Source: Macrostomum lignano (Eukaryota). Taken from it: a stretch of DNA of 64,000 bases. Position 1 is the stretch's first letter, and each line of letters begins with the position of its first letter. Under the pieces are notes generated by a model. The model had not been told where the DNA came from, ran no database searches, and saw only the letters and a program-made list of their open reading frames with translations. The position numbers were made by a program, and so were the translations under genes. The stretch lies in the NCBI GenBank assembly GCA_002269645.1, contig NIVC01000505.1, positions 62,001-126,000 on the forward strand. Direction: 5' to 3'. This document shows positions 8,850 to 60,502 of the stretch, piece by piece.

Positions 8850-9000
8850 ATTCTCTCTGGTCGGTTGGTTGCAAAATCCAAAGAATCTGACATGTTCAAC
8901 AGCATCGATTTTGACTGATCTAGCGTCTTCAAAACTATCCGACAATAATACATTGATTGCGAGTCGAGTCGACAAAGGATAAAAAGAGGAAAGCAATATA

Positions 9001-12000: not shown

Positions 12001-13574
12001 GAGCTAGCTGGCTTAGCAACACAAGCCTATCGTTGTCTTGGACTCCACCGCCAGTGACTGATAGCAATGGAATTCTTACCGGCTTTGTTATTCATTTGCG
12101 TGAACCGGCTTCAGTCAGGCAGTCGCAGCAGTCGTCTGGTAACTCAACATCTGGACTGGAATCTCGTCTAGTTTGGCGCACGATTAGTATTAACAACGGT
12201 AGCGCTAATAGTCACGTGATTACCGGCTTAGATCCTGCCGCAGATTACACTTTACACCTGGCCGCTGTTAATTGTCAAGGCGAAGGAACTAGATCGCCGC
12301 CTCTGCGCATACCATCGGCTATTTATAGTTTGAGCGCGGCGCAGGAAAAGAAGACCCTATTGAAAGAGCCGTGGTTTATCTCAATAATGGTTATTGGAAT
12401 ATTGCTTTGGCTAGCAGTCTGCGCTGTAGTCATCTTCGCCTTCCGGACCCGATGCCTGCATAGAAAGAAGCCGTATTATAAGCCTTATAACAAGGGGGTC
12501 GGTGGCGGCGGCAGCGGCGGCTGCGGTTCTGTCGACGCTAGCGGCAACGCTTTTCCATTGCTAAGCAAGTCGTCCGGCGGTCAGGATGACAGTTCGAATG
12601 GCTCGCGATTCACTGGCGGTGTTGGCCACGGCAGCGGGCACCAGTTGTCTGGCGAGCTGCACCAGCAGTCGCCGCCGCCTCCGCCAGACCTTCTTGATCA
12701 GCAGCAGCAGCAGCAGCATCAGAGTGCCGCTAGCAAGAAGCAACAACAGCAGCAGCAACAGCAACAACTATTCGCTAACAGTCCTATGCATATTCATCAT
12801 ATGCAGCAGCAGACTCCGTTGCTGATGCTGGGACACGGCGGTCCTGTTGTTGACCAGATGCTGCCAGCTGCTCCGATGCCGCCGCCAGCTACGCTGCCCT
12901 CGGTGGCGCCTGTAGCCACTCCGTACGCATCGGCCAGTCTGATTCAGAGCGCCATCCAACAGGACCGGCGCTACCAGCAGGGTTCGTTATATTCCAACGC
13001 CGACGAGCCAGCTTGCTCAATGAGCTGCTCAGATTGTAGCGACATCTCTGACAGTACAGCCGCTGTGCAAGATCATCACCAGCACCAGCATCAGCGTCAC
13101 GTGATGACCTCTTCAGGCGGCGCTGTTGGCAATATTAACTTCCCTAGTTACAAGCCGCCAGCTATGAATATCTGCGATTTCACGCCGCCACCGCCGCCGC
13201 TGTCTGATCTGGTTAGCGGCGGAGGCGGCAGCGGCGGCAGCAGTCGGTGTCCGTATTACACGGCCGATTATCAACAGCAGCAGCAGCAGCAGCAGCCGGC
13301 TTGCAAATCTGGCAGCCAGTCGTCTGAGTCTGGAGCGCCTAGTTGCTATGCTAATTGTGCTCCGGCTTCTACTCAGCAGCAGCAGCGGCTTGACAATAAG
13401 CTGGTTGTCCGACTAACTCCTGTCTCTACTGTTGGTGTTGGCGCCTACGTCACCACGGCCTCCAATTCGTCCTCTTGTTCGCCTAATTTCGGTCCGCAAG
13501 GATTGCCTAATACGGCAACGACAGTACAGCAGGTTCGCGGCGGAGTTATTAGTCATCATCATCATCCAGGGTGA
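9001..13574 (+). CDS. robo: Roundabout-family axon-guidance receptor, join(9001..9198,9711..13574), ~1353 aa
   Basis: Signal peptide MSFIALIALSHMVIASVLA; phase-0 intron (CAG|GTTGGT ... CTGACAG|GTA) joins the two halves of Ig1 in frame; five Ig domains (C...W...YxC), three FN3 domains, TM FISIMVIGILLWLAVCAVVIFAF, cytoplasmic CC1-like TPYASASLI and polyproline motifs. 5 Ig + 3 FN3 + CC1 is the diagnostic Robo architecture. Confidence 0.93.
9300..9612. repeat. 20-bp minisatellite (TATCATCTGGAAGCTTCACA) in the Robo intron
   Basis: About 15 tandem copies, most with an AAGCTT site; source of spurious ORF 9135..9644. Confidence 0.92.
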
Positions 13575-13669
13575 GCTGTCTACTCTGTATGCATATTTGA
13601 TGCGGGATGGCTATTAGCAGCTGACGAGACAAAACATTGAAAGTTCATTTCGATTGCCGGGTAGATAGA

Positions 13670-14398
13670 TGTGAAAGGGGGAGAGGGTAGAGGGGTGTGA
13701 AAAGGGGAGAGGGTAGAGGGGTGTGAGAAGGGGAGAGGGTAGAGGGGTGTGAAAAGGGGAGAGGGTAGAGGGGTGTGAGAAGGGGAGAGGGTAGAGAAGT
13801 GTGAGAAGGGAAGAGGGTAGAGGGGTGTGAGAGGGGGAGAGGGTAGAGGGGTGTGAGAAGGGGAGAGGGTAGAGGGGTGTGAAAAGGGGAGAGGGTAGAG
13901 GGGTGTGAGAAGGGGAGAGGGTAGAGGGGTGTGAGAGGGGGAGAGGGTAGAGGGGTGTGAGAAGGGGAGAGGGTAGAGGGGTGTGAAAAAGGGGAGAGAA
14001 TAGAAGGGTGTGAGAAGTGGAGAGGGTAGAGGGGTGTGAGAAGGGGAGAGGATAGAGGGGTGTGAAAAAGGGGAGAGAATAGAAGGGTGTGAGAAGTGGA
14101 GAGGGTAGAGGGGTGTGAGAAGGGTTGAGGGTAGAGGGGTGTGAGAAGGGGAGAGGGTAGAGGGGTGTGAGAAGGGGAGAGGGTAGAGGGGTGTGAGAAG
14201 GGGAGAGGGTAGAGGGGTGTGAGAAGGGGAGAGGGTAGAGGGGTGTGAGAAGGGGAGAGGGTAGAGGGGTGTGAGAAGGGGAGAGGGTAGAGGGGTGTGA
14301 GAAGGGGAGAGGGTAGAGGGGTGTGAGAAGGGGAGAGGGTAGAGGGGTGTGAGAAGGGGAGAGGGTAGAGGGGTGTGAGAAGGGGAGAGGGTAGAGGA
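13670..14398. repeat. 26-bp G-rich minisatellite (GAGAAGGGGAGAGGGTAGAGGGGTGT)
   Basis: About 28 tandem copies starting ~95 nt after the Robo stop codon. Confidence 0.93.
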
Positions 14399-15139: not shown

Positions 15140-18100
15140 TTAACTCGGATGATAGAAAACTGGCGTTTTGACAACTCGGCCACGCATTGTCCTGTACGGC
15201 TCATCTGACTGCTTTGAGGCCGGCTGCACGGAGGCCGGCTGCACGGAGGCCGGCTGCACGGAGGCCGGCTGCACGGAGGCCGGCTGCACGGAGGCCGGCT
15301 GCACGGAGGCCGGCTGCACGGAGGCCGGCTGCACAGAGGCCGGCTGCACAGAGGCCGGCTGCGCAGAGGCCGGCTGCACGGAGGCCGGCTGCACGGAGGC
15401 CGGCTGCTCAGCCTCGTCGACATCCTCGCTGTCACAATGGAGAGACTCGCTGAATGGCACATCTACCATTCGAGGCCTGATGAAACGGCGATTCCTTCTG
15501 AGCAGCTGACCAGTCTCGGTTCGAACCCAGTACGACCTTGGACAATTCTCCAGCTCGCTGTCGATCTCAGCAGCCACCCAGTCGCGACGACCTCGTTGGA
15601 GCCAGACCAGATCACCAGCAGCTAGTCTCCTCAATGGTCGAGCTCCTCGGTTGTACAACTGCGCTGCCCGAGTGCGCTGCTTCTCAAAGGCCTCTATGCT
15701 TGAGTGTAGGTGAATTTCCTTTGGCCGCAAATCTTGAACAGTTGCAGGCAAGTCGCACCGGAGCTTACGACCGAATGCCATCTCAGCTGGACTCGGAAAG
15801 CCGCTGCCGACTGGGGTGTTGCGGTAGTGAAGCAACGCCAGCTCCAGGTTCTGTCCAGTCTCTGAGCACTTCTTCAGCATATTCTTTGCCGTTTGTACGT
15901 AGCGTTCTGCTCTTCCATTTGATTGCGGGTACGTCGGACTTGAAGTTCGGTGCTCGACCTTGAATTCTGCTATCGTCTGTCGAAATTCCCGAGCGGAAAA
16001 CTGTGGACCTCCGTCGCTGACGAGTTTCTCTGGCACTCCGAAGTTTTGAAAATGGTCCCGAATCACTGAAACGACAGCTGCGCTGGTGGACGATCTCATT
16101 CGAGTGACACTCATCCAGCGACTGTAGGAGTCCACGTACACCAGGTAGGATGAACCGCCGAACTCGAACAGGTCTGTGGAGCAATCTTGGAATGGGAAGC
16201 TCGGCATGTCCACCGTCATCAGCGTCTCCTTAGACTGGGTTCTCATGTTTCGCTGACAAGACTCGCAGTCAGTGACGACCTGCTCCACACAGCTCCGCAT
16301 TCCTGGCCAGTAGAAATAGTCCTTAGCCTTGAGGTGCATTTTCACGATGCCTGGGTGCCCAGCATGAAGAATTTTGAGCACCTGTTTCCTTGAATCTCCG
16401 CTGGGAACATAGATCCGGTCCTTCAAGCACAAAAGTCCGGAAGCATAGGTCAGGTCATGCCGAACGTCCCAAAACGGCTTCAGGTCGTCTGTCAACCTCG
16501 CTCTGTGCTCTGGCCAACCGTCTAGGATGACATTCCGCAACCGCTCGCTCGTCATATCTTTGGCTGTTGCATTCTTGATCATGTGCAAGATCTCGCGGTC
16601 CCCGCTAAAGCAGCGCTCGACTGATAGGACTTGACCATCGAGGGCTTCTTCCAGCTGAATTGTGAGGAGATCAGCTGCACCGTGTGCTCGGCTCAATGTG
16701 TCGGCTACGTGCAACTCCTTTCCGGGAGTGTACTTGACGCGAATGTCATAAGGCTGCAACTGGAGCATAAGTCGCTGAATTCGAGGCGTTGTGTCACACA
16801 GAGCCTTCTTGAAGATCGCCTCCAACGGCTTGTGGTCGCTCTGGACATGCACTGTCCGGCCCCAGATGTATCGATGGAACTTTTTGCAGCCATAGACAAT
16901 AGCAAGAAGCTCTTTCTCGATTTGTGCATATGCTCGCTGGGCACTGGTCATTGCAGAGGACGCGTATTCGACTGGGCGATGGTCTTGTAGCAGCACTGCG
17001 CCAATTCCACTCTTGCTTGCGTCGACTGAAACCGTTACGGGCTTGGCTGTGTCAAAGGTAGCCAGCACCCGGTTCGAGCACAGATCCGCGATGATTGCAT
17101 CATACGCCTGGTCGTGCTGATCCAGCCAGCTCCATATGATTTCCTTCTTCAGGAGATGCCTCAGTGGTTCCGCAGTGGCTGACAGGTGAGGGCAGAATCT
17201 TGCCAAGTAGGTGACACAGCCGAGAAAACGCCTCAGTTGCTCTTTCTTTGCGGTTACGCCTTCCAGAGAGTCGGGTCTTGCCATCTGCTTGATTGCCTTG
17301 ACCTTCTGCGGATCAGCTCGAATTCCATCAGGGCCCAGAATATCGCCTAAGTAGTTCAGCTCTGGGGCTCCAACTCGCATCTTGTTCGGATTCAGCGTGA
17401 CGTTAGCGCGCTTGCACTGCTCCATCAGGCTGCGAACTGCAGTGTCATGTTCCTCGATGGTGCGCCCCCACACGATAATGTCATCGAAAAAGTTTTTCGA
17501 GTTCTTGACGTGACTGGTGACATTCTCCTCCATGCGCTTTTGGAACACTTCGGGGATCGATGATAAGCCGTACGGCACCCGCTTCCACCTGTAACGGCCG
17601 AATGGAGTATGGAACGTAGTGAGGAACGAGCTCTGCTCATCTAGCTTGAGCTGATGGAAACTCTCGTTGGCGTCAAATGTGCTGTACACCACGGCTCCAG
17701 CAGTCGCCATCCGAACTTCCTCCGCCGTTGGAATCGGGTGATACTCGCGGATGATGAACTGGTTCAGGTATGTTGGGTCAAGGCATAGGCGCATCGAGCC
17801 GTCCTTCTTCCAGACAATGGTGACGTTTGAAACCCATTGAGTCGGCTCGTCTACTCGAACAATTTTCCCATCTCTCTCCAGGCGCTCCAGCTCGCACTTC
17901 AATGGCTGATAGGCCGCGAATGGAACCTTGCGTGGCGGCTGGACTTTTGGAGCGGCATTTTCTGTTAGCTGAATTGTGTACTGCTGCTTCATGCACCCGA
18001 CACCTTTGAACACAGTCGGATAGTCTGCTATCAGCTGGCTGCTAGTGATCTGAGACTGGTGGGGTTTCTCAACTTTGCTGAGATTGGCTGGGCTCTTGTT

Positions 18101-19297
18101 TATGGCAAAAAGCTTCCTGATGAGATGCAACTCATGCAGTGCTGACTTCCAACCTATGATCGGAGTCGCGTTTTCTCCAACGACTACAAACTGAAGTTTA
18201 ACGTTTTTCTGACACGGAGACGAAACTGTCAGGTGAGTTAGGCCGACGACATCCAGCTGCTGTCTGTTGTAGGTAGTGAGTGTCCAGGATGTGGGCTCAA
18301 TTTCAGCCGCAGGGGCGAACTTGATCAGGCATCGCAGCGGAACAACGTTGACATCTGCCCCAGTATCGACCTTAAACTGGAGCATCCGTCCCGAATCCTT
18401 CGCCGTGAGATTCACCATCATTGTTGAGTAGTCGTGCAGACGCTGAGCTTCCAGTTTCTCAACTGTCATGACTGTCGCTGGTTTTGCCTTTTGGTCAGCG
18501 TCATCCAGCTGCTGCTTGTCCTCCTGGAGCTCGTTGACTTTCTTTGAGGACCGGCACATTGACGAGAAGTGGTTCAGACGGCCACAGCTGTTACACTTCC
18601 TACCGTAGGCTGGGCATTTTCTCCGCTCGTGCTGCAGTCCGCAGAAGCCACAGCCGCGGCCTGAAGGCGGTTTTGGTGGGCCAGCTGGTGCTCGGGGTCC
18701 ACCTTGGACAACATCCACCGTTGACGGCGGAGCTCGGCCGCTCTGAGTTGCCAGCAGAGCGCTAGCCTGTCGCTTTGACGTCTCCGAAGCCCGTCCCATC
18801 TGAATTGCACGGTTGAGTGTCAGGTTGGACTCACGGAGTAGTCTCTCTTTGAGCGCTGGGTCGCCGACTCCGATCACGATCTGGTCGCGGATGACGCTGT
18901 CGCCGACTGACTCGCCGTTGGCCGGTGTCGCGTAGTTGCACCTGGTCACGAGCTGTCGCAGAGAGGCAACGAACTGATCGAAGTCTTCCGACTCCTTCTG
19001 CACTCTGGTTCTGAACAGGTAGCGGTCGAAGGTCTCGTTGCTCATTGGCTCACAGTAATTCTTGAATTGATTGAGAACCCCAGCGTATGTCGCCACTTCG
19101 GCTGTCGGGAAGGTGGAGAACACGTCTTGTCCTTCTGATCCGAGCGCAGTCAACAGTATTGCAATCTTGACCTCTTCGCTCTCCTCCGTTTTCTTGGTTG
19201 CCTTCATGTAGAAGTCGATCGCTTTGCTCCATTTTCTCCAGTTATCTGCGCGATTGGCATCAAAAACCATCGGCTCTGGAGGCCTCAGTCCTTCCAT
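15140..19297 (-). CDS. Gag-Pol polyprotein (1385 aa): gag, 2x CCHC knuckle, aspartic protease, RT, RNase H, integrase
   Basis: CGFCGLQHERRKCPAYGRKCNSCGRLNHFSSMC; protease FKVDTGAD; RT LDANESF-like/FFDDII region; RNase H VDASKSG...EKELLA...SDHKPL; integrase HAGH...CESC and D(STDLF)-D(SDGGPQF)-E(NGRAER). PR-RT-RH-IN order is Ty3/gypsy; the double CCHC and single ORF are Mag-like. Confidence 0.96.
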   Translation of the reverse strand: MEGLRPPEPMVFDANRADNWRKWSKAIDFYMKATKKTEESEEVKIAILLTALGSEGQDVFSTFPTAEVATYAGVLNQFKNYCEPMSNETFDRYLFRTRVQKESEDFDQFVASLRQLVTRCNYATPANGESVGDSVIRDQIVIGVGDPALKERLLRESNLTLNRAIQMGRASETSKRQASALLATQSGRAPPSTVDVVQGGPRAPAGPPKPPSGRGCGFCGLQHERRKCPAYGRKCNSCGRLNHFSSMCRSSKKVNELQEDKQQLDDADQKAKPATVMTVEKLEAQRLHDYSTMMVNLTAKDSGRMLQFKVDTGADVNVVPLRCLIKFAPAAEIEPTSWTLTTYNRQQLDVVGLTHLTVSSPCQKNVKLQFVVVGENATPIIGWKSALHELHLIRKLFAINKSPANLSKVEKPHQSQITSSQLIADYPTVFKGVGCMKQQYTIQLTENAAPKVQPPRKVPFAAYQPLKCELERLERDGKIVRVDEPTQWVSNVTIVWKKDGSMRLCLDPTYLNQFIIREYHPIPTAEEVRMATAGAVVYSTFDANESFHQLKLDEQSSFLTTFHTPFGRYRWKRVPYGLSSIPEVFQKRMEENVTSHVKNSKNFFDDIIVWGRTIEEHDTAVRSLMEQCKRANVTLNPNKMRVGAPELNYLGDILGPDGIRADPQKVKAIKQMARPDSLEGVTAKKEQLRRFLGCVTYLARFCPHLSATAEPLRHLLKKEIIWSWLDQHDQAYDAIIADLCSNRVLATFDTAKPVTVSVDASKSGIGAVLLQDHRPVEYASSAMTSAQRAYAQIEKELLAIVYGCKKFHRYIWGRTVHVQSDHKPLEAIFKKALCDTTPRIQRLMLQLQPYDIRVKYTPGKELHVADTLSRAHGAADLLTIQLEEALDGQVLSVERCFSGDREILHMIKNATAKDMTSERLRNVILDGWPEHRARLTDDLKPFWDVRHDLTYASGLLCLKDRIYVPSGDSRKQVLKILHAGHPGIVKMHLKAKDYFYWPGMRSCVEQVVTDCESCQRNMRTQSKETLMTVDMPSFPFQDCSTDLFEFGGSSYLVYVDSYSRWMSVTRMRSSTSAAVVSVIRDHFQNFGVPEKLVSDGGPQFSAREFRQTIAEFKVEHRTSSPTYPQSNGRAERYVQTAKNMLKKCSETGQNLELALLHYRNTPVGSGFPSPAEMAFGRKLRCDLPATVQDLRPKEIHLHSSIEAFEKQRTRAAQLYNRGARPLRRLAAGDLVWLQRGRRDWVAAEIDSELENCPRSYWVRTETGQLLRRNRRFIRPRMVDVPFSESLHCDSEDVDEAEQPASVQPASVQPASAQPASVQPASVQPASVQPASVQPASVQPASVQPASVQPASVQPASVQPASKQSDEPYRTMRGRVVKTPVFYHPS

Positions 19298-19348
19298 TAG
19301 CTAGCTTGCTTGGCTATTGGGGGAAAGTACTTTATGCTTGCGACGCCA

Positions 19349-28865: not shown

Positions 28866-30786
28866 CTATATTGAAGAATCGCCCATCCAATATTCAAGAA
28901 TCGCCCATAAGATATTCAAGAATCGCCCATAAGATATTGAAGAATCGCCCATAAGATATTCAAGAATCGCCCATAAGATATTGAAGAATCGCCCATAAGA
29001 TATTCAAGAATCGCCCATAAGATATTCAAGAATCGCCCATAAGATATTCAAGAATCGCCCATAAGATATTCAAGAATCGCCCATAAGATATTGAAGAATC
29101 GCCCATAAGATATTGAAGAATCGCCCATAAGATATTGAAGAATCGGCCATAAGATATTGAAGAATCGGCCATAAGATATTCAAGAATCGCCCATAAGATA
29201 TTCAAGAATCGCCCATAAGATATTCAAGAATCGCCCATAAGATATTCAAGAATCGCCCATAAGATATTCAAGAATCGCCCATAAGATATTCAAGAATCGC
29301 CCATAAGATATTGAAGAATCGCCCATAAGATATTGAAGAATCGCCCATAAGATATTGAAGAATCGGCCATAAGATATTGAAGAATCGCCCATAAAATATT
29401 GAAGAATCGGCCATAAGATATTGAAGAATCGCCCATAAGATATTGAAGAATCGGCCATAAGATATTGAAGAATCGGCCATAAGATATTGAAGAATCGCCC
29501 ATAAAATATTGAAGAATCGGCCATAAGATATTGAAGAATCGCCATAAGATATTCAAGAATCGCCCATAAAATATTGAAGAATCGGCCATAAGATATTGAA
29601 GAATCGCCATAAGATATTCAAGAATCGCCCATAAAATACTGAAGAATCGCCCATAAGATATTCAAGAATCGGCCATAAGATATTCAAGAATCGCACATAA
29701 GATATTCAAGAATCGCCCATAAAATATTGAAGAATCGGCCATAAGATATTGAAGAATCGCCCATAAGATATTGAAGAATCGCCCATAAGATATTGAAGAA
29801 TCGCCCATAAAATATTGAAGAATCGGCCATAAGATATTGAAGAATCGCCCATAAGATATTGAAGAATCGCCCATAAAATATTGAAGAATCGGCCATAAGA
29901 TATTGAAGAATCGCCCATAAGATATTGAAGAATCGCCCATAAGATATTGAAGAATCGCCCATAAAATATTGAAGAATCGGCCATAAGATATTGAAGAATC
30001 GCCCATAAGATATTGAAGAATCGCCCATAAAATATTGAAGAATCGCCATAAGATATTCAAGAATCGCCCATAAGATATTCAAGAATCGCCCATAAGATAT
30101 TGAAGAATCGGCCATACGATATTGAAGAATCGCCCATAAGATATTCAAGAATCGCCCATAAGATATTCAAGAATCGCCCATAAGATATTGAAGAATCGGC
30201 CATAAGATATTGAAGAATCGCCCATAAGATATTCAAGAATCGCCCATAAGATATTCAAGAATCGCTCATAAGATACTAAAGAATCGGCCATAAGATATTG
30301 AAGAATCGGCCATAAGATATTGAAGAATCGGCCATAAGATATTGAAGAATCGCCCATAAGATATTGAAGAATCGCCCATAAAATATTGAAGAATCGGCCA
30401 TAAGATATTGAAGAATCGCCCATAAGATATTCAAGAATCGCACATAAGATATTCAAGAATCGCCCATAAAATATTGAAGAATCGGCCATAAGATATTCAA
30501 GAATCGGCCATAAGATATTGAAGAATCGCCCATAAGATATTCAAGAATCGCCCATAAGATATTCAAGAATCGCCCATAAGATATTGAAGAATCGCCCATA
30601 AGATATTCAAAAATCGCCCATAAGATATTGAAGAATCGGCCATAAGATATTCAAGAATCGCCCATAAGATATTGAAGAATCGCCCATAAGATATTCAAGA
30701 ATCGCCCATAAGATATTCAAGAATCGCCCATAAGATATTCAAGAATCGCCCATAAGATATTGAAGAATCGGCCATAAGATATTGAA
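28866..30786. repeat. 22-bp satellite (GAAGAATCGCCCATAAGATATT)
   Basis: About 87 tandem copies. Confidence 0.96.
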
Positions 30787-31278: not shown

Positions 31279-31683
31279 ATGAGAGTCGCCCTCGAAATCA
31301 CCGGTGATGAGAGAATCGCACTGGAAATCACCGGTGATGAGAGAATCGCCCTGGAAATCATCAGTGATGAGAGAGTCGCCCTGGAAATCATCAGTGATGA
31401 GAGAGTCGCCCTGGAAATCATCAGTGATGAGAGAATCACCCCGGAAATCACCGGTGATGAGAGAGTCGCCCTCGAAATCACCGGTGATGAGAGAATCGCC
31501 CTGGAAATCACCAGTGATGAGAGAATCGCCCTGGAAATCATCAGTAATGAGAGAATCGCCCTGGAAATCATCAGTGATGAGAGAATCACCCCGGAAATCA
31601 CCGGTGATGAGAGAATCGCACTGGAAATCACCGGTGATGAGAGAATCGCCCTGGAAATCACCAGTGATGAGAGAATCACCCTG
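31279..31683. repeat. 30-bp minisatellite (GAGAGAATCGCCCTGGAAATCACCGGTGAT)
   Basis: About 13 copies, starting ~17 nt past the stop codon of the - strand gene; 10-aa periodicity in the ORF track. Confidence 0.93.
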
Positions 31684-31700: not shown

Positions 31701-34700
31701 TCAACAGCCATCCACAAACGCGGTCATGAGTCGCAGAGTAACCCTGCCGTGTCCGCCGTCCGAGTTGCCTCCTCCGACCTCTTGACAGCTGCCGTCGGCG
31801 CCGCAGTAGGAGCCGCCACCGCCGCCTCCGTGATAGCGGTTAACCCCGGCGCCCCCGCCGCTGAAGCCGCCGCCAGCGCCTCCGGCTCCGTAGTTGTCAG
31901 CAGCGCCACCACCTCCGCCGCCGCCGAAGCCTCCGTTGCCGCCGTTACCGACGCCACCGACGCCACCGACGCCGCCAACGCCGCCCACCCAGCCGTCGGC
32001 CAGACCGCCGCCTCGTTCGCCGTCGCGAGTGCCTCGCCTCGGGTTGACGGCCCGGCCCAGCCAGCCGGCGCCGCAGCCGCCGTGAGTCTGCATTGATGGA
32101 GTGTCTCCAGGAGTGTTCTGGCCAGGGTGTCCGTTGTAACCTCCAGTTCCTCTGGTGTTGTCGTACACGGAAGATGCCGATGAGCGGCCTCCATTAGCTG
32201 TACTTCTGCCTGGCGCTCCTGCATTTCAGTAATGGAGTGAACTGTGGATGATGGATGAGAATCTATTGAGTATCATTGATGAAAATTTATTGAGTATCAA
32301 TGATGAGAATGAGCATCATTGAGTATCATGGATGAGAATCTATAGAGTATCAATGATGAGAATGAGTATCATTGAGTATCATGGATGAGAATCTATTGAG
32401 TATCATGGATGAGAATCTCTTGAGTATCATGGATGAAAATCTATTGAGTATCATGAATGAGAATCTATTGAGTATCAATGATGAGAATCTATTGAGAATC
32501 ATTGATGAGAATCTATTGAGAATCATGGATGAGAATCTATTGAGTATCATCGATGAGAATCTATTGAGTATCAATGATGAGAATGAGTATCATTGAGTAT
32601 CATGGATGAGAATCTATTGAGTATGATGGATGAGAATCTATTGACAATCATGGATGAGAATCTATTGAGTATCATGAATGAGAATCTATTGAGTATCAAT
32701 GATGAGAATCTATTGAGAATCATGGATGAGAATCTATTGAGAATCATTGATGAGAATCTATTGAGAATCATGGATGAGAATCTATTGAGTATCATCGATG
32801 AAAATCTATTGAGTATCAATGATGAGAATGAGTATCATTGAGTATCATGGATGAGAATCTATAGAGTATCAATGATGAGAATGAGTATCATTGAGTATCA
32901 TGGATGAGAATCTATTGAGTATCATGGATGAGAATCTATTGAGTATCATGGATGAAAATCTATTGAGTATCATGAATGAGAATCTATTGAGTATCAATGA
33001 TGAGAATCTATTGAGAATCATTGATGAGAATCTATTGAGAATCATGGATGAGAATCTATTGAGTATCATCGATGAGAATCTATTGAGTATCAATGATGAG
33101 AATGAGTATCATTGAGTATCATGGATGAGAATCTATTGAGTATCATGGATGAGAATCTATTGAGAATCATCGATGAGAATCTATTGAGTATCATGGATGA
33201 GAATCTATTGAGAATCATGGATGAGAATCTATTGAGTATCATCGATGAGAATCTATTGAAAATCATGGATGAGAATCTATTGAGAATCATGGATGAGAAT
33301 CTATTAAGAATCATCGATTAGAATCTATTAAGAATCATCGATTAGAATCTATTGAGAATCATCGATTAGAATCTATTGAGAATCATCGATGAGAATCTAT
33401 TGAGTATCATGGATGAGAATCTATTGAGAATCATGGATGAGAATCTATTGAGAATCATCGATGAGAATCTATTCAGAATCATCGATGAGAATCTATTGAG
33501 TATCATGAATGAGAATCTATTGAGTATCAATGATGAGAATCTATTGAGAATCATGGATGAGAATCTATTGAGAATCATTGATGAGAATCTATTGAGAATC
33601 ATGGATGAGAATCTATTGAGTATCATCGATGAGAATCTATTGAGAATCATGGATGAGAATCTATTGAGAATCATCGATGAGAATCTATTAAGAATCATCG
33701 ATGAGAATCTATTGAGAATCATGGATGAGAATCTATTGAGAATCATCGATGAGAATCTATTAAGAATCATCGATGAGAATCTATTGAGTATCAATGATGA
33801 GAATCTATTGAGAATCATGGATGAGAATCTATTGAGAATCATTGATGAGAATCTATTAAGAATCATCGATGAGAATCTATTAAGAATCATCGATGAGAAT
33901 CTATTGAGAATCATCGATTAGAATCTATTAAGAATCATGGATGAGAATCTATTGAGAATCATGGATGAGAATCTATTGAGAATCATGGATGAGAATCTAT
34001 TGAGAATCATCGATGAGAATCTATTAAGAATCATCGATGAGAATCTATTGAGTATCAATGATGAGAATCTATTGAGAATCATGGATGAGAATCTATTGAG
34101 AATCATTGATGAGAATCTATTGAGAATCATGGATGAGAATCTATTGAGTATCATCGATGAGAATCTATTGAGAATCATGGATGAGAATCTATTGAGTATC
34201 AATGATGAGAATCTATTGAGAATCATCGATGAGAATCTATTGAGAATCATCGATGAGAATCTATTGAGTATCAATGATGAGAATCTATTGAGAATCAATG
34301 ATGAGAATCTATTGAGAATCATCGATGAGAATCTATTGAGAATCATCGATGAGAATCTATTGAGAATCATGGATGAGAATCTATTGAGAATCATCGATGA
34401 GAATCTATTGAGTATCAATGATGAGAATCTATTGAGAATCATCGATGAGAATCTATTAAGAATCATCGATGAGAATCTATTGAGAATCATGGATGAGAAT
34501 CTATTGAGAATCATCGATGAGAATCTATTAAGAATCATCGATGAGAATCTATTGAGAATCATCGATGAGAATCTATTGAGAATCATCGATGAGAATCTAT
34601 TGAGAATCATCGATGAGAATCTATTGAGAATCATCGATGAGAATCTATTAAGAATCATCGATGAGAATCTATTAAGAATCATCGATGAGAATCTATTGAG

Positions 34701-37700
34701 AATCATCGATAAGAATCTATTGAGAATCATCGATGAGAATCTATTAAGAATCATGGATGAGAATCTATTGAGAATCATCGATGAGAATCTATTGAGTATC
34801 AATGATGAGAATCTATTGAGAATCATCGATGAGAATCTATTGAGAATCATCGATTAGAATCTATTGAGAATCATGGATGAGAATCTATTGAGAATCATCG
34901 ATGAGAATCTATTGAGAATCATCGATAAGAATCTATTAAGAATCATCGATGAGAATCTATTGAGAATCATGGATGAGAATCTATTAAGAATCATCGATTA
35001 GAATCTATTGAGAATCATGGATGAGAATCTATTGAGTATCATGGATGAGAATCTATTGAGAATCATCGATGAGAATCTATTGAGTATAGATGATGAGAAT
35101 CTATTGAGAATCATCGATGAGAATCTATTGAGAATCATGGATGAGAATCTATTAAGAATCATCGATTAGAATCTATTGAGAATCATGGATGAGAATCTAT
35201 TAAGAATCATCGATGAGAATCTATTGAGTATCATGGATGAGAATCTATTAAGAATCATCGATGAGAATCTATTGAGTATCAATGATGAGAATCTATTGAG
35301 AATCATCGATGAGAATCTATTGAGAATCATGGATGAGAATCTATTAAGAATCATCGATGAGAATCTATTGAGTATCATGGATGAGAATCTATTAAGAATC
35401 ATCGATTAGAATCTATTGAGAATCATCGATGAGAATCTATTAAGAATCATCGATTAGAATCTATTGAGAATCATGGATGAGAATCTATTAAGAATCATCG
35501 ATGAGAATCTATTAAGAATCATCGATGAGAATCTATTAAGAATCATGGATGAGAATCTATTGAGAATCATCGATGAGAATCTATTAAGAATCATCGATGA
35601 GAATCTATTGAGTATCAATGATGAGAATCTATTGAGAATCATCGATGAGAATCTATTGAGAATCATCGATGAGAATCTATTAAGAATCATCGATGAGAAT
35701 CTATTGAGTATCAATGATGAGAATCTATTAAGAATCATCGATGAGAATCTATTAAGAATCATCGATGAGAATCTATTGAGAATCATGGATGAGAATCTAT
35801 TGAGAATCATCGATGAGAATCTATTAAGAATCATGGATGAGAATCTATTAAGAATCATCGATAAGAATCTATTGAGAATCATCGATGAGAATCTATTAAG
35901 AATCATCGATGAGAATCTATTGAGAATCATGGATGAGAATCTATTGAGAATCATCGATGAGAATCTATTAAGAATCATCGATGAGAATCTATTGAGTATC
36001 AATGATGAGAATCTATTGAGAATCATGGATGAGAATCTATTGAGAATCATTGATGAGAATCTATTGAGAATCATGGATGAGAATCTATTGAGTATCATCG
36101 ATGAGAATCTATTGAGAATCATGGATGAGAATCTATTGAGTATCAATGATGAGAATCTATTGAGAATCATCGATTAGAATCTATTGAGAATCATCGATGA
36201 GAATCTATTGAGAATCATGGATGAGAATCTATTGAGTATCATCGATAAGAATCTATTGAGAATCATCGATGAGAATCTATTGAGAATCATGGATGAGAAT
36301 CTATTGAGAATCATCGATTAGAATCTATTGAGAATCATCGATGAGAATCTATTGAGAATCATCGATGAGAATCTATTGAGTATCATGGATGAGAATCTAT
36401 TGAGTATCATCGATAAGAATCTATTAAGAATCATGGATGAGAATCTATTGAGTATCAATGATGAGAATCTATTGAGAATCATCGATTAGAATCTATTGAG
36501 AATCATCGATGAGAATCTATTAAGAATCATCGATGAGAATCTATTGAGTATCATGGATGAGAATCTATTGAGTATCATCGATAAGAATCTATTAAGAATC
36601 ATGGATGAGAATCTATTGAGTATCAATGATGAGAATCTATTGAGAATCATCGATTAGAATCTATTGAGAATCATCGATAAGAATCTATTAAGAATCATCG
36701 ATGAGAATCTATTGAGAATCATGGATGAGAATCTATTAAGAATCATCGATTAGAATCTATTGAGAATCATCGATGAGAATCTATTAAGAATCATCGATTA
36801 GAATCTATTGAGAATCATGGATGAGAATCTATTAAGAATCATCGATGAGAATCTATTAAGAATCATCGATGAGAATCTATTGAGAATCATGGATGAGAAT
36901 CTATTAAGAATCATCGATTAGAATCTATTGAGAATCATGGATGAGAATCTATTGAGAATCATCGATGAGAATCTATTGAGAATCATGGATGAGAATCTAT
37001 TAAGAATCATCGATGAGAATCTATTGAGTATCATGGATGAGAATCTATTAAGAATCATCGATGAGAATCTATTGAGTATCAATGATGAGAATCTATTGAG
37101 AATCATCGATGAGAATCTATTGAGAATCATGGATGAGAATCTATTAAGAATCATCGATGAGAATCTATTGAGTATCATGGATGAGAATCTATTAAGAATC
37201 ATCGATTAGAATCTATTGAGTATCAATGATGAGAATCTATTAAGAATCATCGATAAGAATCTATTGAGAATCATGGATGAGAATCTATTGAGTATCAATG
37301 ATGAGAATCTATTGAGAATCATCGATTAGAATCTATTGAGAATCATCGATAAGAATCTATTAAGAATCATCGATGAGAATCTATTGAGAATCATGGATGA
37401 GAATCTATTAAGAATCATCGATTAGAATCTATTGAGAATCATGGATGAGAATCTATTGAGTATCAATGATGAGAATCTATTGAGAATCATCGATGAGAAT
37501 CTATTGAGAATCATGGATGAGAATCTATTAAGAATCATCGATGAGAATCTATTGAGTATCATGGATGAGAATCTATTAAGAATCATCGATTAGAATCTAT
37601 TGAGTATCAATGATGAGAATCTATTGAGAATCATCGATGAGAATCTATTGAGAATCATCGATGAGAATCTATTAAGAATCATCGATTAGAATCTATTGAG

Positions 37701-40700
37701 AATCATCGATGAGAATCTATTAAGAATCATCGATTAGAATCTATTGAGTATCATCGATTAGAATCTATTGAGAATCATCGATGAGAATCTATTAAGAATC
37801 ATCGATTAGAATCTATTAAGAATCATCGATTAGAATCTATTGAGAATCATCGATGAGAATCTATTGAGAATCATCGATTAGAATCTATTGAGAATCATCG
37901 ATGAGAATCTATTAAGAATCATCGATGAGAATCTATTAAGAATCATCGATTAGAATCTATTGAGAATCATCGATGAGAATCTATTAAGAATCATCGATGA
38001 GAATCTATTGAGTATCAATGATGAAAATCTATTAAGAATCATCGATGAGAATCTATTAAGAATCATCGATGAGAATCTATTGAGAATCATCGATGAGAAT
38101 CTATTAAGAATCATGGATGAGAATCTATTGAGTATCAATGATGAGAATCTATTAAGAATCATCGATGAGAATCTATTGAGAATCATCGATGAGAATCTAT
38201 TAAGAATCATCGATGAGAATCTATTGAGTATCAATGATGAGAATCTATTAAGAATCATCGATGAGAATCTATTGAGAATCATCGATGAGAATCTATTAAG
38301 AATCATCGATTAGAATCTATTGAGAATCATCGATGAGAATCTATTAAGAATCATCGATGAGAATCTATTGAGAATCATGATGAGAATCTATTAAGAATCA
38401 TCGATGAGAATCTATTAAGAATCATCGATGAGAATCTATTAAGAATCATCGATGAGAATCTATTGAGAATCATCGATGAGAATCTATTAAGAATCATCGA
38501 TGAGAATCTATTGAGTATCAATGATGAGAATCTATTGAGAATCATCGATGAGAATCTATTGAGAATCATGGATGAGAATCTATTAAGAATCATCGATGAG
38601 AATCTATTGAGTATCAATGATGAGAATCTATTAAGAATCATCGATGAGAATCTATTAAGAATCATCGATGAGAATCTATTGAGAATCATCGATGAGAATC
38701 TATTGAGAATCATCGATGAGAATCTATTAAGAATCATCGATGAGAATCTATTAAGAATCATCGATAAGAATCTATTGAGAATCATCGATGAGAATCTATT
38801 AAGAATCATCGATGAGAATCTATTGAGTATCAATGATGAGAATCTATTGAGAATCATCGATGAGAATCTATTGAGAATCATCGATGAGAATCTATTAAGA
38901 ATCATCGATGAGAATCTATTAAGAATCATCGATAAGAATCTATTGAGAATCATCGATGAGAATCTATTGAGAATCATGGATGAGAATCTATTGAGAATCA
39001 TCGATGAGAATCTATTGAGAATCATCGATGAGAATCTATTGAGAATCATCGATTAGAATCTATTGAGAATCATCGATTAGAATCTATTGAGAATCATCGA
39101 TGAGAATCTATTGAGAATCATCGATGAGAATCTATTGAGAATCATCGATAAGAATCTATTGAGAATCATCGATGAGAATCTATTGAGAATCATGGATGAG
39201 AATCTATTGAGAATCATCGATTAGAATCTATTGAGAATCATCGATGAGAATCTATTGAGAATCATCGATGAGAATCTATTGAGTATCATGGATGAGAATC
39301 TATTGAGTATCATCGATAAGAATCTATTAAGAATCATGATGAGAATCTATTGAGTATCAATGATGAGAATCTATTGAGAATCATCGATTAGAATCTATTG
39401 AGAATCATCGATGAGAATCTATTGAGAATCATCGATGAGAATCTATTGAGTATCATGGATGAGAATCTATTGAGTATCATCGATAAGAATCTATTAAGAA
39501 TCATGGATGAGAATCTATTGAGTATCATGATGAGAATCTATTGAGAATCATCGATTAGAATCTATTGAGAATCATCGATAGAATCTATTAAGAATCATCG
39601 ATGAGAATCTATTGAGAATCATGGATGAGAATCTATTAAGAATCATCGATTAGAATCTATTGAGAATCATGGATGAGAATCTATTGAGTATCATGGATGA
39701 GAATCTATTGAGAATCATCGATGAGAATCTATTGAGTATCAATGATGAGAATCTATTGAGAATCATCGATGAGAATCTATTGAGAATCATGGATGAGAAT
39801 CTATTAAGAATCATCGATTAGAATCTATTGAGAATCATGGATGAGAATCTATTGAGAATCATCGATGAGAATCTATTGAGAATCATGGATGAGAATCTAT
39901 TAAGAATCATCGATTAGAATCTATTGAGTATCATGGATGAGAATCTATTAAGAATCATCGATGAGAATCTATTGAGGATCAATGATGAGAATCTATTGAG
40001 AATCATCGATGAGAATCTATTGAGAATCATGGATGAGAATCTATTAAGAATCATCGATGAGAATCTATTGAGTATCATGGATGAGAATCTATTAAGAATC
40101 ATCGATTAGAATCTATTGAGTATCAATGATGAGAATCTATTAAGAATCATCGATGAGAATCTATTGAGAATCATCGATGAGAATCTATTAAGAATCATCG
40201 ATTAGAATCTATTGAGAATCATCGATGAGAATCTATTAAGAATCATCGATTAGAATCTATTGAGTATCATCGATTAGAATCTATTAGAATCATCGATGAG
40301 AATCTATTAAGAATCATCGATTAGAATCTATTAAGAATCATCGATTAGAATCTATTGAGAATCATCGATGAGAATCTATTGAGAATCATCGATTAGAATC
40401 TATTGAGAATCATCGATGAGAATCTATTAAGAATCATCGATGAGAATCTATTAAGAATCATCGATGAGAATCTATTGAGAATCATCGATGAGAATCTATT
40501 AAGAATCATCGATGAGAATCTATTGAGTATCAATGATGAGAATCTATTAAGAATCATCGATGAGAATCTATTGAGTATCAATGATGAGAATCTATTGAGA
40601 ATCATCGATGAGAATCTATTAAGAATCATGGATGAGAATCTATTGAGAATCATCGATGAGAATCTATTAAGAATCATCGATGAGAATCTATTGAGTATCA

Positions 40701-43700
40701 ATGATGAGAATCTATTAAGAATCATCGATGAGAATCTATTGAGAATCATCGATGAGAATCTATTAAGAATCATCGATGAGAATCTATTGAGAATCATCGA
40801 TGAGAATCTATTAAGAATCATCGATGAGAATCTATTGAGAATCATCGATGAGAATCTATTAGAATCATCGATGAGAATCTATTAAGAATCATCGATGAGA
40901 ATCTATTAAGAATCATGGATGAGAATCTATTAAGAATCATCGATGAGAATCTATTAAGAATCATCGATGAGAATCTATTGAGAATCATGATGAGAATCTA
41001 TTGAGAATCATCGATGAGAATCTATTGAGAATCATCGATGAGAATCTATTGAGAATCATCGATGAGAATCTATTAAGAATCATCGATGAGAATCTATTAA
41101 GAATCATCGATGAGAATCTATTAAGAATCATCGATGAGAATCTATTAAGAATCATCGATGAGAATCTATTGAGAATCATGATGAGAATCTATTGAGAATC
41201 ATCGATGAGAATCTATTGAGAATCATCGATGAGAATCTATTAAGAATCATCGATGAGAATCTATTGAGAATCATCGATGAGAATCTATTAAGAATCATCG
41301 ATGAGAATCTATTAAGAATCATCGATGAGAATCTATTGAGAATCATCGATGAGAATCTATTGAGAATCATCGATGAGAATCTATTAAGAATCATCGATGA
41401 GAATCTATTGAGAATCATCGATGAGAATCTATTGAGAATCATCGATGAGAATCTATTAAGAATCATCGATGAGAATCTATTAGAATCATCGATGAGAATC
41501 TATTGAGAATCATCGATGAGAATCTATTGAGAATCATCGATGAGAATCTATTGAGAATCATCGATGAGAATCTATTGAGAATCATCGATGAGAATCTATT
41601 GAGAATCATCGATGAGAATCTATTGAGAATCATCGATGAGAATCTATTGAGAATCATCGATGAGAATCTATTGAGAATCATCGATGAGAATCTATTGAGA
41701 ATCATCGATGAGAATCTATTGAGAATCATCGATGAGAATCTATTGAGAATCATCGATGAGAATCTATTGAGAATCATGATGAGAATCTATTGAGAATCAT
41801 CGATTAGAATCTATTGAGAATCATCGATGAGAATCTATTGAGAATCATCGATGAGAATCTATTGAGAATCATCATGGAATGAGAATCTATTGAGTATCAT
41901 CGATAAGAATCTATTAAGAATCATGGATGAGAATCTATTGAGTATCAATGATGAGAATCTATTGAGAATCATCGATTAGAATCTATTGAGAATCATCGAT
42001 GAGAATCTATTGAGAATCATCGATGAGAATCTATTGAGAATCATCGATTAGAATCTATTGAGAATCATCGATGAGAATCTATTCAGAATCATAGATTAGA
42101 ACCTATTGAGAATGAGAATCCTGGATGAGAATCTATTGAGAATTATGGATCATGGACTACTATAATACATAGAAAAACGGGCTCACCACTGTGTGCATGA
42201 GAGGCGCCGCCGCCTCCTCCAGCCGCAGCCAGCAGATAATTATCGCCAGTCCGATAGACGAAGCTGCCTCCGCCGCCTCCTGCTCCAGCCTTGCCCGAGC
42301 TGGAACTGTTTACACTGCTGCCCGCCTGTCCAACAACCACGGCTAGCCGAGTGCCCGCTGTCAGGTTGAAATTGCCGCTGACGGTGGCGCCCCGACCTCC
42401 GGCATGATTTCTGATTGGATTGTCGCCGCCTTTGGCGCCAGCCGCCGCGATGCGGTAGCAGCCGGTGACGCCGATTAGCGAGTATTGAATAAATCCGGCT
42501 GGATATTCGGGTTCGAGATTTGGGATCTTGAATGGGTCTGATGGAGACCGTCAGGAGTGTTTTGTAGAGGCTGTCAGGAGTGTTTAGTTGGAGTGTCAGG
42601 AGTGTTTTTTGGGGTGTCAGGAGTGTTTATTTGGGGTGTCAGGAGTGTTTAGTTGGGGTGTCGGGAGTGTTTATTTGGGGTGTCAGGAGTGTTTAGTTGG
42701 GGTGTCAGGAGTGTTTATATTGGGTGTCAGGAGTGTTTCGTTGGGGTGTCAGGAGTGTTTATTTGGGGTGTCAGGAGTGTTTATATTGGGTGTCAGGAGT
42801 GTTTAGTTGGGGTGTCAGGAGTGTTTATTTGGGGTGTCAGGAGTGTTTATTTGGGGTGTCAGGAGTGTTTATATTGGGTGTCAGGAGTGTTTATATTGGG
42901 TGTCAGGAGTGTTTATTTGGGGTGTCAGGAGTGTTTATTTGGGGTGTCAGGAGTGTTTAGTTGGGGTGTCAGGAGTGTTTAGTTGGGGTGTCAGGAGTGT
43001 TTATTTGGGGTGTCAGGAGTGTTTATTTGGGGTGTCAGGAGTGTTTATTTGGGGTGTCAGGAGTGTTTAGTTGGGGTGTCGAGAGTGTTTATTTGGGGTG
43101 TCAGGAGTGTTTATTTGGGGTGTCAGGAGTGTTTATATTGGGTGTCAGGAGTGTTTAATTGGGGTGTCAGGAGTGTTTAATTGGGGTGTCAGGAGTGTTT
43201 ATTTGGGGTGTCAGGAGTGTTTAGTTGGGGTGTCAGGATTGTCAAGATGGGGTGTCAGGAGTGCCAAGTTATGGTGTCGATCAGGAGAGCCAACAGCTGA
43301 CTCAACAATCCAAATTAAAAGCAGCAACTACTTACGGTCAGAGAGCTGAAAAGTAATCACTATTGCTTCGCCCTTGACCCAAACAGTGACCTCATCAGCT
43401 TGGCTGGTCGATATTGGTTGCAGAGCAGTGAGTCTGCTTTCGGCTAGGGCAGAACTTCCCGGAGCAGTCACTGCCATAGCCAGCTGACAAGAAGTCAAAG
43501 CACTCTGCCCAGAGGATGCAGCTAAGAAGCAAGTGCTTGCAGTTTTGCAGCGAATCAGACAGTCAATATCAGACAGGGCGGTAAATTTTTCAACTGCACC
43601 TGCGGCTGCCATCGCCTGGTTAGTGAGATTTAAACCGGTCAGTGACTTGATGTCAGTGAATTCTGTAGAACTCACAATAGACGGTGTCGCGAGTCTGATG

Positions 43701-44358
43701 ACTGGAAAAATTGAGAATTATACAAGATATTTCTTCTCATACCTTACCTTATTCTTTTGTTCTTAGCTTGACTTGTGCGATGTAGCAGCAGGTCATGTGA
43801 CAGACTGTGTGCTGCTGAAACAGGTCATGTGACAGACTGTGTGCTGCTGAAACAGGTCATGTGACAGACTGTGTGCTGCTGAAACAGGTCATGTGACAGA
43901 CTGTGTGCTGCTGAAACAGGTCATGTGACAGACTGTGTGCTGCTGAAACAGGTCATGTGACAGAATGTGTGCTGTAGCAGCAGGTCATGTGACAGACTGT
44001 GTGCTGCTGAAACAGGTCATGTGACAGACTGTGTGCTGTAGCAGCTGGTCATGTGACAGACTGTGTGGCTGTAGCAGCAGGTCATGTGACAGACTGTGTG
44101 CTGTAGCAGCTGGTCATGTGACAGACTGTGTGGCTGTAGCAGCTGGTCATGTGACGGACTGTGTGCTGTTGAAACAGGTCATGTGACAGACTGTGTGCTG
44201 TAGCAGCTGGTCATGTGAAAGACAGTGTAATTGTGCAGCAGGTCATGTGACAGACTGTGTGCTGGTGCAGCTGGTCATGTGACGGATTGTGTGCTGTAGC
44301 AGCAGGTCATGTGTGATAGGAAACGCTTACCGTTTGCAGCAATAATTAAGAAGAGCAT
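31701..44358 (-). CDS. Putative secreted PAN/apple-like + ALK/LTK glycine-rich-domain protein, complement(join(31701..32218,42187..42537,43336..43701,44331..44358)), 420 aa
   Basis: All three introns are GT-AG and phase 1, and the exons sum to 1263 nt. N-terminus MLFLIIAANVIRLATPSIVSS is hydrophobic. DCLIRCKTASTC...SCQL is a PAN-like Cys spacing. QYSLIGVTGCYRIAAAGAKGG...GGRGATVSGNFNLTAGTRLAVVVGQ...GGGGGSFV...LLAAAGGGG...GGFGGGGGG...GGGGGGSY matches the pattern of the ALK/LTK TNF-like/glycine-rich ectodomain. No TM or kinase before the stop. Confidence 0.85.
32250..42143. repeat. ~9.9-kb 24-bp satellite (GATGAGAATCTATTGAGAATCATC) filling intron 3
   Basis: About 410 copies; source of all MILNRFSS/IDENLLRI ORFs. 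Confidence 0.97.
42550..43262. repeat. 22-bp intronic minisatellite (GTTTATTTGGGGTGTCAGGAGT)
   Basis: About 32 copies within intron 2 of the - strand gene. Confidence 0.94.
43785..44312. repeat. 32-bp intronic minisatellite (CAGGTCATGTGACAGACTGTGTGCTGCTGAAA)
   Basis: About 16-17 copies within intron 1. Confidence 0.93.

Positions 44359-45441: not shown

Positions 45442-60502
<15,061 letters not shown>

Follow-up and report, generated by a model that had tools for sequence, protein, structure and literature searches.

Gene structure

Within a 64-kb stretch of the genome of the flatworm Macrostomum lignano (contig NIVC01000505.1, positions 62,001 to 126,000; hereafter the window), we identified on the minus strand what appears to be an intact four-exon gene, predicted to encode a soluble, secreted protein of 420 amino acids. 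A predicted signal peptide and a four-cysteine module resembling PAN/apple domains (the N-module) are followed by a TNF-like/glycine-rich (TG) domain, the glycine-rich domain (GRD, PF12810) of the receptors ALK and LTK. Script assembly over the region read from 44700 to 31200 joined the four exons in phase into a coding sequence of 1,263 nt with no internal stop codon. The parts of the gene, in window coordinates, are as follows.

Exon 1, 44358-44331, minus strand: 28 nt, with the ATG at 44358 and the first nine codons (MLFLIIAAN) of the predicted signal peptide; donor GTAAGC.
Intron 1, 43702-44330, minus strand: 629 nt, nearly filled by a minisatellite of 16.8 copies of a 32-mer (43774-44313).
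Exon 2, 43701-43336, minus strand: 366 nt, with the remainder of the predicted signal peptide, the PAN/apple-like N-module (approximately residues 27-112) and the opening TNF-like strands (VWVKGE...).
Cysteine core of the N-module, 43487-43561, minus strand: C57-x3-C61-x5-C67-x13-C81.
Intron 2, 42538-43335, minus strand: 798 nt, with a minisatellite of 32.5 copies of a 22-mer (42550-43263).
Exon 3, 42537-42187, minus strand: 351 nt, the first half of the TG domain, TGCYRIAAAGAKGG ... AAAGGGGGASHAHS.
Intron 3, 32219-42186, minus strand: 9,968 nt; an array of 409.8 copies of a 24-mer (GATGAGAATCTATTGAGAATCATC) at 32254-42113 takes up 9,860 nt of it.
Exon 4, 32218-31701, minus strand: 518 nt including the TGA (31703-31701), the second half of the TG domain, ending ...GRVTLRLMTAFVDGC.
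3′ flank, 31281-31683: a minisatellite of 13.4 copies of a 30-mer, starting 18 nt past the stop codon.

All introns run from GT to AG (GTAAGC...CCAG, GTAAGT...ATCAG and GTGAGC...TGCAG) with phases 1/1/1, and the phase-consistent 420-residue model proposed in a first-pass annotation of this DNA was thus reproduced. Besides the reading frame, homology supports the junctions. An alignment with twelve relatives continues across the exon 2/3 and 3/4 boundaries free of indels, and the junction at residues 251/252 is spanned by one BLASTP high-scoring segment pair of 60% identity to the M. lignano paralogue P0001 (residues 146-326). The N-terminus given by exon 1 resembles that of paralogue P0004 (MLFIIYIV...), and in the structural model of paralogue P0002 the strands begin at the VWK motif. 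A tblastn search of the product against the window matched the exon pieces alone, with no second copy. Exact-sequence look-ups of the exon 4 open reading frame (ORF) and of P0002 returned no record, and an Rfam scan of the whole window returned no family.

Intron 3 splits the glycine-rich domain. The satellite arrays generate long repetitive pseudo-ORFs that flood the ORF list, and the earlier suggestion that a satellite of approximately 10 kb was behind the junk-like ORF track proved correct. This locus illustrates how satellite-filled introns can conceal genes from ORF-based scans.

Topology

The sole hydrophobic stretch of the protein is residues 1-19 (MLFLIIAANVIRLA), with a Kyte-Doolittle mean of 1.94 over a 19-residue window compared with 1.04 for the next best segment. 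This agrees with the hydrophobic N-terminus reported in the first-pass annotation, and the paralogues and cnidarian relatives also have clear signal-like N-termini. By the same measure there is no transmembrane helix after the TG domain, as no hydrophobic segment occurs beyond residues 1-19. The stop codon lies directly after the C-terminal Cys420, approximately 10 residues beyond the last β-strand, and M. lignano paralogues with complete C-termini share both the end point and the terminal cysteine (P0001 ...FADKCN, P0010 ...VDGSCK, P0005 ...GTACG). Moreover, none of the tyrosine-kinase signatures HRDxxxxN, DFG, GxGxxG..V, DxWSxG and xxAPE was found in the six frames of the window. Nor did any EGF-like, MAM or LDLa module give a Pfam match in the 420-residue product, whose sequence terminates with the TG domain. 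The protein had been described as soluble, modular and without a membrane anchor or kinase, and these results uphold that description.

The TNF-like/glycine-rich domain

The C-terminal part of approximately 300 residues, 33% of them glycine, makes up the TG domain. This structural identification is highly probable, and at the level of the family the domain is of the ALK/LTK type. A profile of 95 relatives with the window protein as its first row (profile A2), when run against solved structures, matched human ALK (7nx3_A) with E=2.1e-38 over profile positions 48-349, LTK with 3.7e-37 and Caenorhabditis elegans SCD-2 with 1.6e-17. In addition, 8 of 13 close relatives individually pass PF12810. 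The match extends over the whole domain, and at family level the first-pass annotation was right to call it complete.

The glycine motifs of the family (GAxGG, GGGGGSFVY, AAGGGGG, GGxGAGW, GGFGGGGGG, GGGGYSGGG and GGGGGSY) are all present and aligned, and their glycine columns are invariant or near-invariant in the family alignments. The window TG domain is 47-58% identical to those of its paralogues, the variable parts being the loops between glycine motifs. At one motif it departs from the family consensus NSSTGRNGSIQ, reading NLEPEYPAGFIQ.

An AlphaFold 2 (AF2) model was made on the full-length paralogue P0002, whose TG domain shares 54% identity with that of the window protein, using a 97-row alignment. 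Its TG domain was predicted with a local distance difference test score (pLDDT) of 90-98. Searched against the PDB, this model recovered ALK, LTK and SCD-2 GRDs as all of its top 21 matches (E down to 7.7e-12, probability 1.0), followed by the tail fibre of cyanophage Pam3 (7ypx, E=0.13). The ALK-type fold that had been anticipated was therefore found, on this paralogue.

The N-terminal module

The four cysteines of the N-module are invariant in an alignment of 17 sequences that includes members passing Pfam PAN_1, and C57, C61, C67 and C81 of the window protein fall in those columns. Their spacing is comparable to that of C30, C34, C42 and C54 in the plasminogen PAN domain, as checked on the plasminogen sequence. 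At the same position PAN_1 (cutoff 21.4 bits) is passed by unit 2 of P0153 (23.5 bits), P0264 (22.6), P0277 (21.6) and the Nematostella relative P0239 (33.0).

A profile of six N-module sequences found no PAN structure in the PDB, and hhalign of that profile against the PAN domains of plasminogen and HGF was insignificant. With the deeper 17-sequence profile the same hhalign comparison gave E=0.0028 (probability 11%), and all five PDB matches were PAN/apple modules (E=0.008-0.47). These five were Toxoplasma MIC4, an entry named 'microneme antigen L2', Eimeria MIC5, factor XI apple 4 and the HGF N domain, with the apicomplexan micronemal proteins leading. A flatworm-only profile matched two micronemal PAN proteins alone (E=0.29-0.42). 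The N-terminal part of the P0002 model has a pLDDT below 55, and N-modules are just 5-29% identical between the window protein and its paralogues, as against 47-58% for the TG domain.

For the family, a highly divergent PAN/apple domain is well supported by these comparisons. For the window copy the same label is weakly suggested by position, and the module would be expected to adopt the PAN fold. The four-cysteine PAN/apple-like module of the first-pass annotation is correct in kind and is the least secure element of that description: the cysteines are as described and PAN_1 matches in relatives support PAN for the family, whereas the window copy is itself without a significant match.

Family and distribution

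A search of 5.8 billion proteins recovered 255 relatives, none of them more than 60% identical to the window protein. Eleven M. lignano clusters lead (36-60% identity, several with PF12810), and many bacterial and metagenome PF12810 proteins follow. An exhaustive HMMER search with a flatworm-only profile returned 6,373 representatives at E<=1e-3, 2,326 at E<=1e-10 and 111 at E<=1e-30. Closest to the window protein are M. lignano entries, which number in the dozens and include many fragments or chimeras. An expanded, uncharacterised family had been suspected, and these numbers bear it out.

Like the window protein, the M. lignano proteins A0A1I8HRN4, A0A1I8GD17, A0A1I8IUV7 ('Apple domain-containing'), A0A1I8I814 ('WSC domain-containing'), A0A1I8GEH1 and PAA57358.1 combine a predicted signal peptide, a four-cysteine N-module and a TG domain, and they share its C-terminal cysteine end. 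Here again the TG domains are 47-58% identical to that of the window protein and the N-modules just 5-29%.

Many M. lignano relatives have been named automatically as 'receptor protein-tyrosine kinase', 'protein kinase domain-containing' or 'PE-PGRS'. No Pfam kinase was found in the kinase-named M. lignano models scanned, and the kinase names are rule-based. The M. lignano UniProt models P0153, P0159, P0172, P0175, P0227 and P0005 are often long or oddly named, for example as myosin, kinesin light chain or calmodulin. A0A1I8G307 (P0153) is a demonstrable chimera in which three units of N-module plus GRD are fused to IFT140, and the calmodulin-named P0005 has EF-hand Pfam matches upstream of its GRD. 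We considered whether paralogue names such as WSC, PPC, F5/8C, calmodulin and myosin record swapped lectin modules and rejected this, as the WSC- and Apple-named proteins align on the same four-cysteine module and P0153 is chimeric. For GRD proteins automatic names such as 'receptor protein-tyrosine kinase', 'loricrin-like' and 'PE-PGRS' are misleading and should not be propagated.

The same architecture occurs in cnidarians. Nematostella XP_048583957.1 consists of a signal peptide, PAN_1 (33 bits) and a GRD, without a kinase, and XP_048576998.1 of the same genus, also kinase-less, has a PAN-like module, EGF and a GRD. The latter is named 'loricrin-like', which is the RefSeq name of cnidarian relatives; those of Pocillopora are named 'Apple domain-containing' or 'loricrin-like' and are likewise kinase-less. 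A jellyfish relative, also without a kinase, has six EGF modules, a C-type lectin and a GRD, and Sanderia EP00794_P006995 is among the secreted, kinase-less cnidarian proteins. Cnidarian GRDs differ from that of the window protein in a long insert (…VEIRGGRRTTSSAASLGESVEDNAGTGGGG…), and the modules that accompany them also differ (EGF, C-type lectin). P0013, a relative with no module but a GRD, is 41-44% identical; it is encoded on an 81-kb contig of eukaryote type, next to exons for Ig and collagen.

The choanoflagellate protein Monosiga brevicollis XP_001748072.1 has 5 GRDs. Similar multi-GRD proteins of 2-3,000 residues, one with an F5/8C domain, were also recovered. In bacteria, fungi (Kwoniella, Drechmeria) and protists, standalone PF12810 proteins have the same domain as the window protein and no PAN, often with several GRDs per protein. 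Surface or secretion tags (T9SS, PF18962; PEP-CTERM, PF07589) are found on the bacterial ones. The function of the standalone proteins is unassigned (PMC4859500).

Taken together, these comparisons point to an old and widespread architecture of signal peptide, PAN and GRD. The window gene is a new paralogue or orthologue in a flatworm-expanded (Macrostomum-type) branch of an old secreted GRD family. This family, like its architecture, can already be found in public databases.

Relation to ALK/LTK and to phage proteins

In a phmmer search the window TG domain scored 129-255 bits against M. lignano paralogues, 95-108 against cnidarian-type GRDs, 45-93 against bacterial, fungal and metagenome GRDs and 16 against human ALK. 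The TG ectodomain of ALK, LTK and SCD-2 is homologous to the window domain, which is predicted to have the same fold, in which glycine motifs form a polyglycine-II (PGII) lattice on a TNF-like β-sandwich. Unlike ALK and LTK, the window protein is without an EGF-like module, transmembrane helix, kinase or MAM/LDLa modules, and the N-terminal segment of its TNF-like part is shorter.

When the P0002 model was searched against BFVD, 91 predicted viral proteins were matched at E<=1e-3, the best with E=2.3e-17 and a root-mean-square deviation of 3.2 Å to a Caudovirales protein. The best of these predicted phage and giant-virus matches were stronger than the matches to ALK. Judging from such models, the GRD fold appears to be common in viral surface proteins. 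Among the BFVD matches were virion and tail proteins of cyanophages, proteins of Caulobacter phages, and proteins of algal giant viruses in which LamG or collagen-like modules accompany the fold. The TNF-like plus glycine-rich unit of Pam3 gp24 has a structure similar to the SCD-2 ectodomain and is the host-recognition part of the fibre, and in both Pam3 gp24 and S16 gp38 this unit is a receptor-binding device (PMC9608196). These tail-fibre tips are trimeric, with N-terminal attachment helices and chaperone-assisted folding, unlike the window protein, and the likeness is one of fold alone.

From these comparisons the family does not look like a derivative of ALK; it looks like an ancient group of extracellular modules that supplied the ALK ectodomain. 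The simpler reading is that ALK and LTK took over an extracellular binding module that already existed, and that the window gene is an ordinary member outside the receptor lineage.

Proposed function and alternatives

We suggest that the protein may act as a secreted, bivalent extracellular binder. The predicted signal peptide would direct it to secretion, after which a fast-evolving, disulphide-bonded PAN/apple-like module would precede a complete TNF-like/PGII domain. The rigid PGII lattice and the TNF-like sandwich would present the variable inter-motif loops as one binding face, in the manner of ALK and LTK with their ligand and of phage tail-fibre tips with host receptors. A second site, probably for glycan or protein, would come from the PAN-like module. 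So built, the protein would not signal but could link or cover targets outside the cell, for example matrix, mucus or the surfaces of microbes. PAN/apple modules are protein- and glycan-binding domains, which for the window protein is just a lead. In other animals, GRDs are accompanied by extracellular-matrix or lectin modules (EGF, C-type lectin and F5/8C). The adhesive or immune-effector role raised in the first-pass annotation is plausible and lies close to the reading favoured here. This functional reading we offer tentatively, as possible. The overall explanation, joining the identity of the gene with a binder function, we judge slightly probable on balance, because the identity is nearly secure and the function is far less so.

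Several observations weigh against this explanation. Pfam hmmscan of the 420-residue product returned no family even at E<=1, nor did NCBIfam, the absent PF12810 match probably being due to a compositional-bias filter. Against PDB sequences phmmer of the product reached E~0.07 to ALK, all matches but the last being ALK or LTK ectodomains, and the ALK-type fold of the window product is taken from the model of its paralogue P0002. For the N-module, the Pfam PAN models gave no match to the window copy even at E<=10 and AF2 of the exon 2 product reached a pLDDT of 38.5. With a leave-one-out profile the window module ranked first of 2,001 at 17.8 bits, and two shuffles reached 15.8-16.7. The joining of the exons is predicted from DNA sequence and homology, and expression of the gene is putative. 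All function is proposed from fold and domain company, and our search of the literature on kinase-less animal GRD proteins, including Macrostomum, PF12810 and loricrin-like cnidarian topics, found no study.

A protein that is 33% glycine in its TG part, secreted by prediction and encoded by a multi-copy family could instead be bulk structural material, self-assembling into an eggshell, mucus, adhesive or cuticle-like layer with no specific ligand. The protein has nine cysteines, an odd number that would leave one free for cross-linking, and cnidarian relatives are automatically named loricrin-like. However, that name reflects composition alone, and conservation tracks discrete motifs. The glycine runs are conserved and ordered parts of a fold that is compact and globular (pLDDT >90 in the paralogue model) and do not form a disordered low-complexity region. 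We consider bulk structural material unlikely.

It is also conceivable that the gene is an unexpressed or decaying paralogue, a recent duplicate that lies amid growing minisatellites and has lost its transcription, or its correct splicing across the 10-kb intron. The locus is known from DNA sequence, a 10-kb tandem array lies inside one intron, 5.8 billion proteins hold no match above 60% identity, and the window copy departs from the NSSTGRNGSIQ consensus. Against decay stand an open frame of 1,263 nt in four pieces with canonical splice sites throughout, and the retention of the glycine, cysteine and aromatic positions that are invariant in the family. Moreover, satellite-filled introns are found in neighbouring genes too and are normal for this genome. 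We regard decay as improbable.

Lastly, the ALK antagonism suggested in the first-pass annotation, considered here as a decoy or ligand trap whose soluble TG domain would sequester the ALK ligand or heterodimerise with ALK, is very improbable: the predicted fold is indeed that of the ligand-binding and dimerising region of ALK/LTK and the protein is soluble and kinase-less, but human ALK, at 16 bits, is much further from its domain than are the standalone GRDs of bacteria, fungi and metagenomes (45-93 bits), phage proteins match the fold better than ALK does, dozens of divergent M. lignano paralogues and the kinase-less cnidarian and choanoflagellate relatives are unlike a dedicated decoy, no protein with both GRD and kinase surfaced among the flatworm matches (the kinase-named models scanned having no Pfam kinase), and ALKAL ligands are vertebrate-only, the invertebrate ligands Jeb and HEN-1 being unrelated LDLa proteins (PMC10605310).

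The extracellular binder can be taken one step further. The flatworm PAN-GRD proteins might be diversified soluble recognition molecules that turn the PGII/TNF-like device of phage tips towards the surfaces of microbes or partner cells, their specificity being set by the fast-evolving PAN module and the inter-motif loops. This is speculative and rather doubtful. If true, they would form a class of animal pattern-recognition or gamete/mucus-recognition proteins that has so far been overlooked, and would be living representatives of the secreted ancestor of the ALK/LTK ligand-binding region.

The structure of the ALK and LTK ligand-binding fold became known only in 2021, and the fold tends to be regarded as peculiar to receptors. 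The present locus and its relatives suggest that the same fold also forms the body of ordinary secreted animal proteins, combined with a signal peptide and PAN in an expanded flatworm lineage and in cnidarians, and repeated in the multi-GRD proteins of a choanoflagellate. M. lignano is a tractable model with RNA interference and transgenesis, and a study of its PAN-GRD proteins could reveal both the role of the fold outside receptor signalling and the origin of the ALK ectodomain.

Neighbouring genes and minisatellites

The PAN-GRD gene is followed downstream by a Ty3/gypsy pol in the same orientation and a Robo-like gene in the opposite one, and an ankyrin-repeat gene is found upstream of it. 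They are as follows.

8983-13571, plus strand: Robo/L1-like gene with four Ig I-set domains and FN3 in a single open stretch of 1,288 codons.
15143-19300, minus strand: gag-pol ORF of a Ty3/gypsy-type long terminal repeat retroelement, 1,386 codons uninterrupted, with reverse transcriptase, RNase H and an integrase zinc finger and core.
46453-60500, plus strand: multi-exon ankyrin-repeat gene, with Ank matches at 46453-46827, 50997-51293 and 51887-52135.

The best match of the Robo-like ORF was bird Robo3 at 32%, with no flatworm protein among its matches, and the best database relatives of the gag-pol ORF are just 43% identical. Of the genes compared, the PAN-GRD family alone indicated a flatworm close to Macrostomum, and this locus at least seems to be missing from the databases searched. 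A later exon of the ankyrin-repeat gene may resemble TRPA-type channels.

Nearly every intron and spacer in the window has its own private minisatellite, with 45 Tandem Repeats Finder (TRF) rows and units of 4-190 nt in arrays of up to 10 kb. Example arrays from TRF are listed below.

13659-14397: minisatellite array.
28868-30786: minisatellite array.
48215-50380: minisatellite array.
52722-55685: minisatellite array.
56300-57128: minisatellite array.
57601-58217: minisatellite array.
58480-59365: minisatellite array.
59788-60145: minisatellite array.

The introns of the ankyrin-repeat gene likewise carry minisatellites. We therefore rejected the idea that the 10-kb satellite is special to the PAN-GRD gene, and its satellite-filled introns represent the norm for this genome, because those of the neighbouring genes are alike.

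The arrays at 28868-30786, 31281-31683 and 32254-42113, with units of 22, 30 and 24 nt respectively, have a common core (GA[A/G]GAATC, GAATCGCCC and GATGAGA..ATC), and by this resemblance the three may have been derived from one another. A 73-codon ORF occurs three times on the minus strand (53175-53393, 54297-54515 and 54959-55177), the middle copy with one substitution. All three copies sit in the long (ATCT)n tract at 52722-55685, and their recurrence therefore indicates a higher-order repeat of approximately 0.7-1.1 kb.

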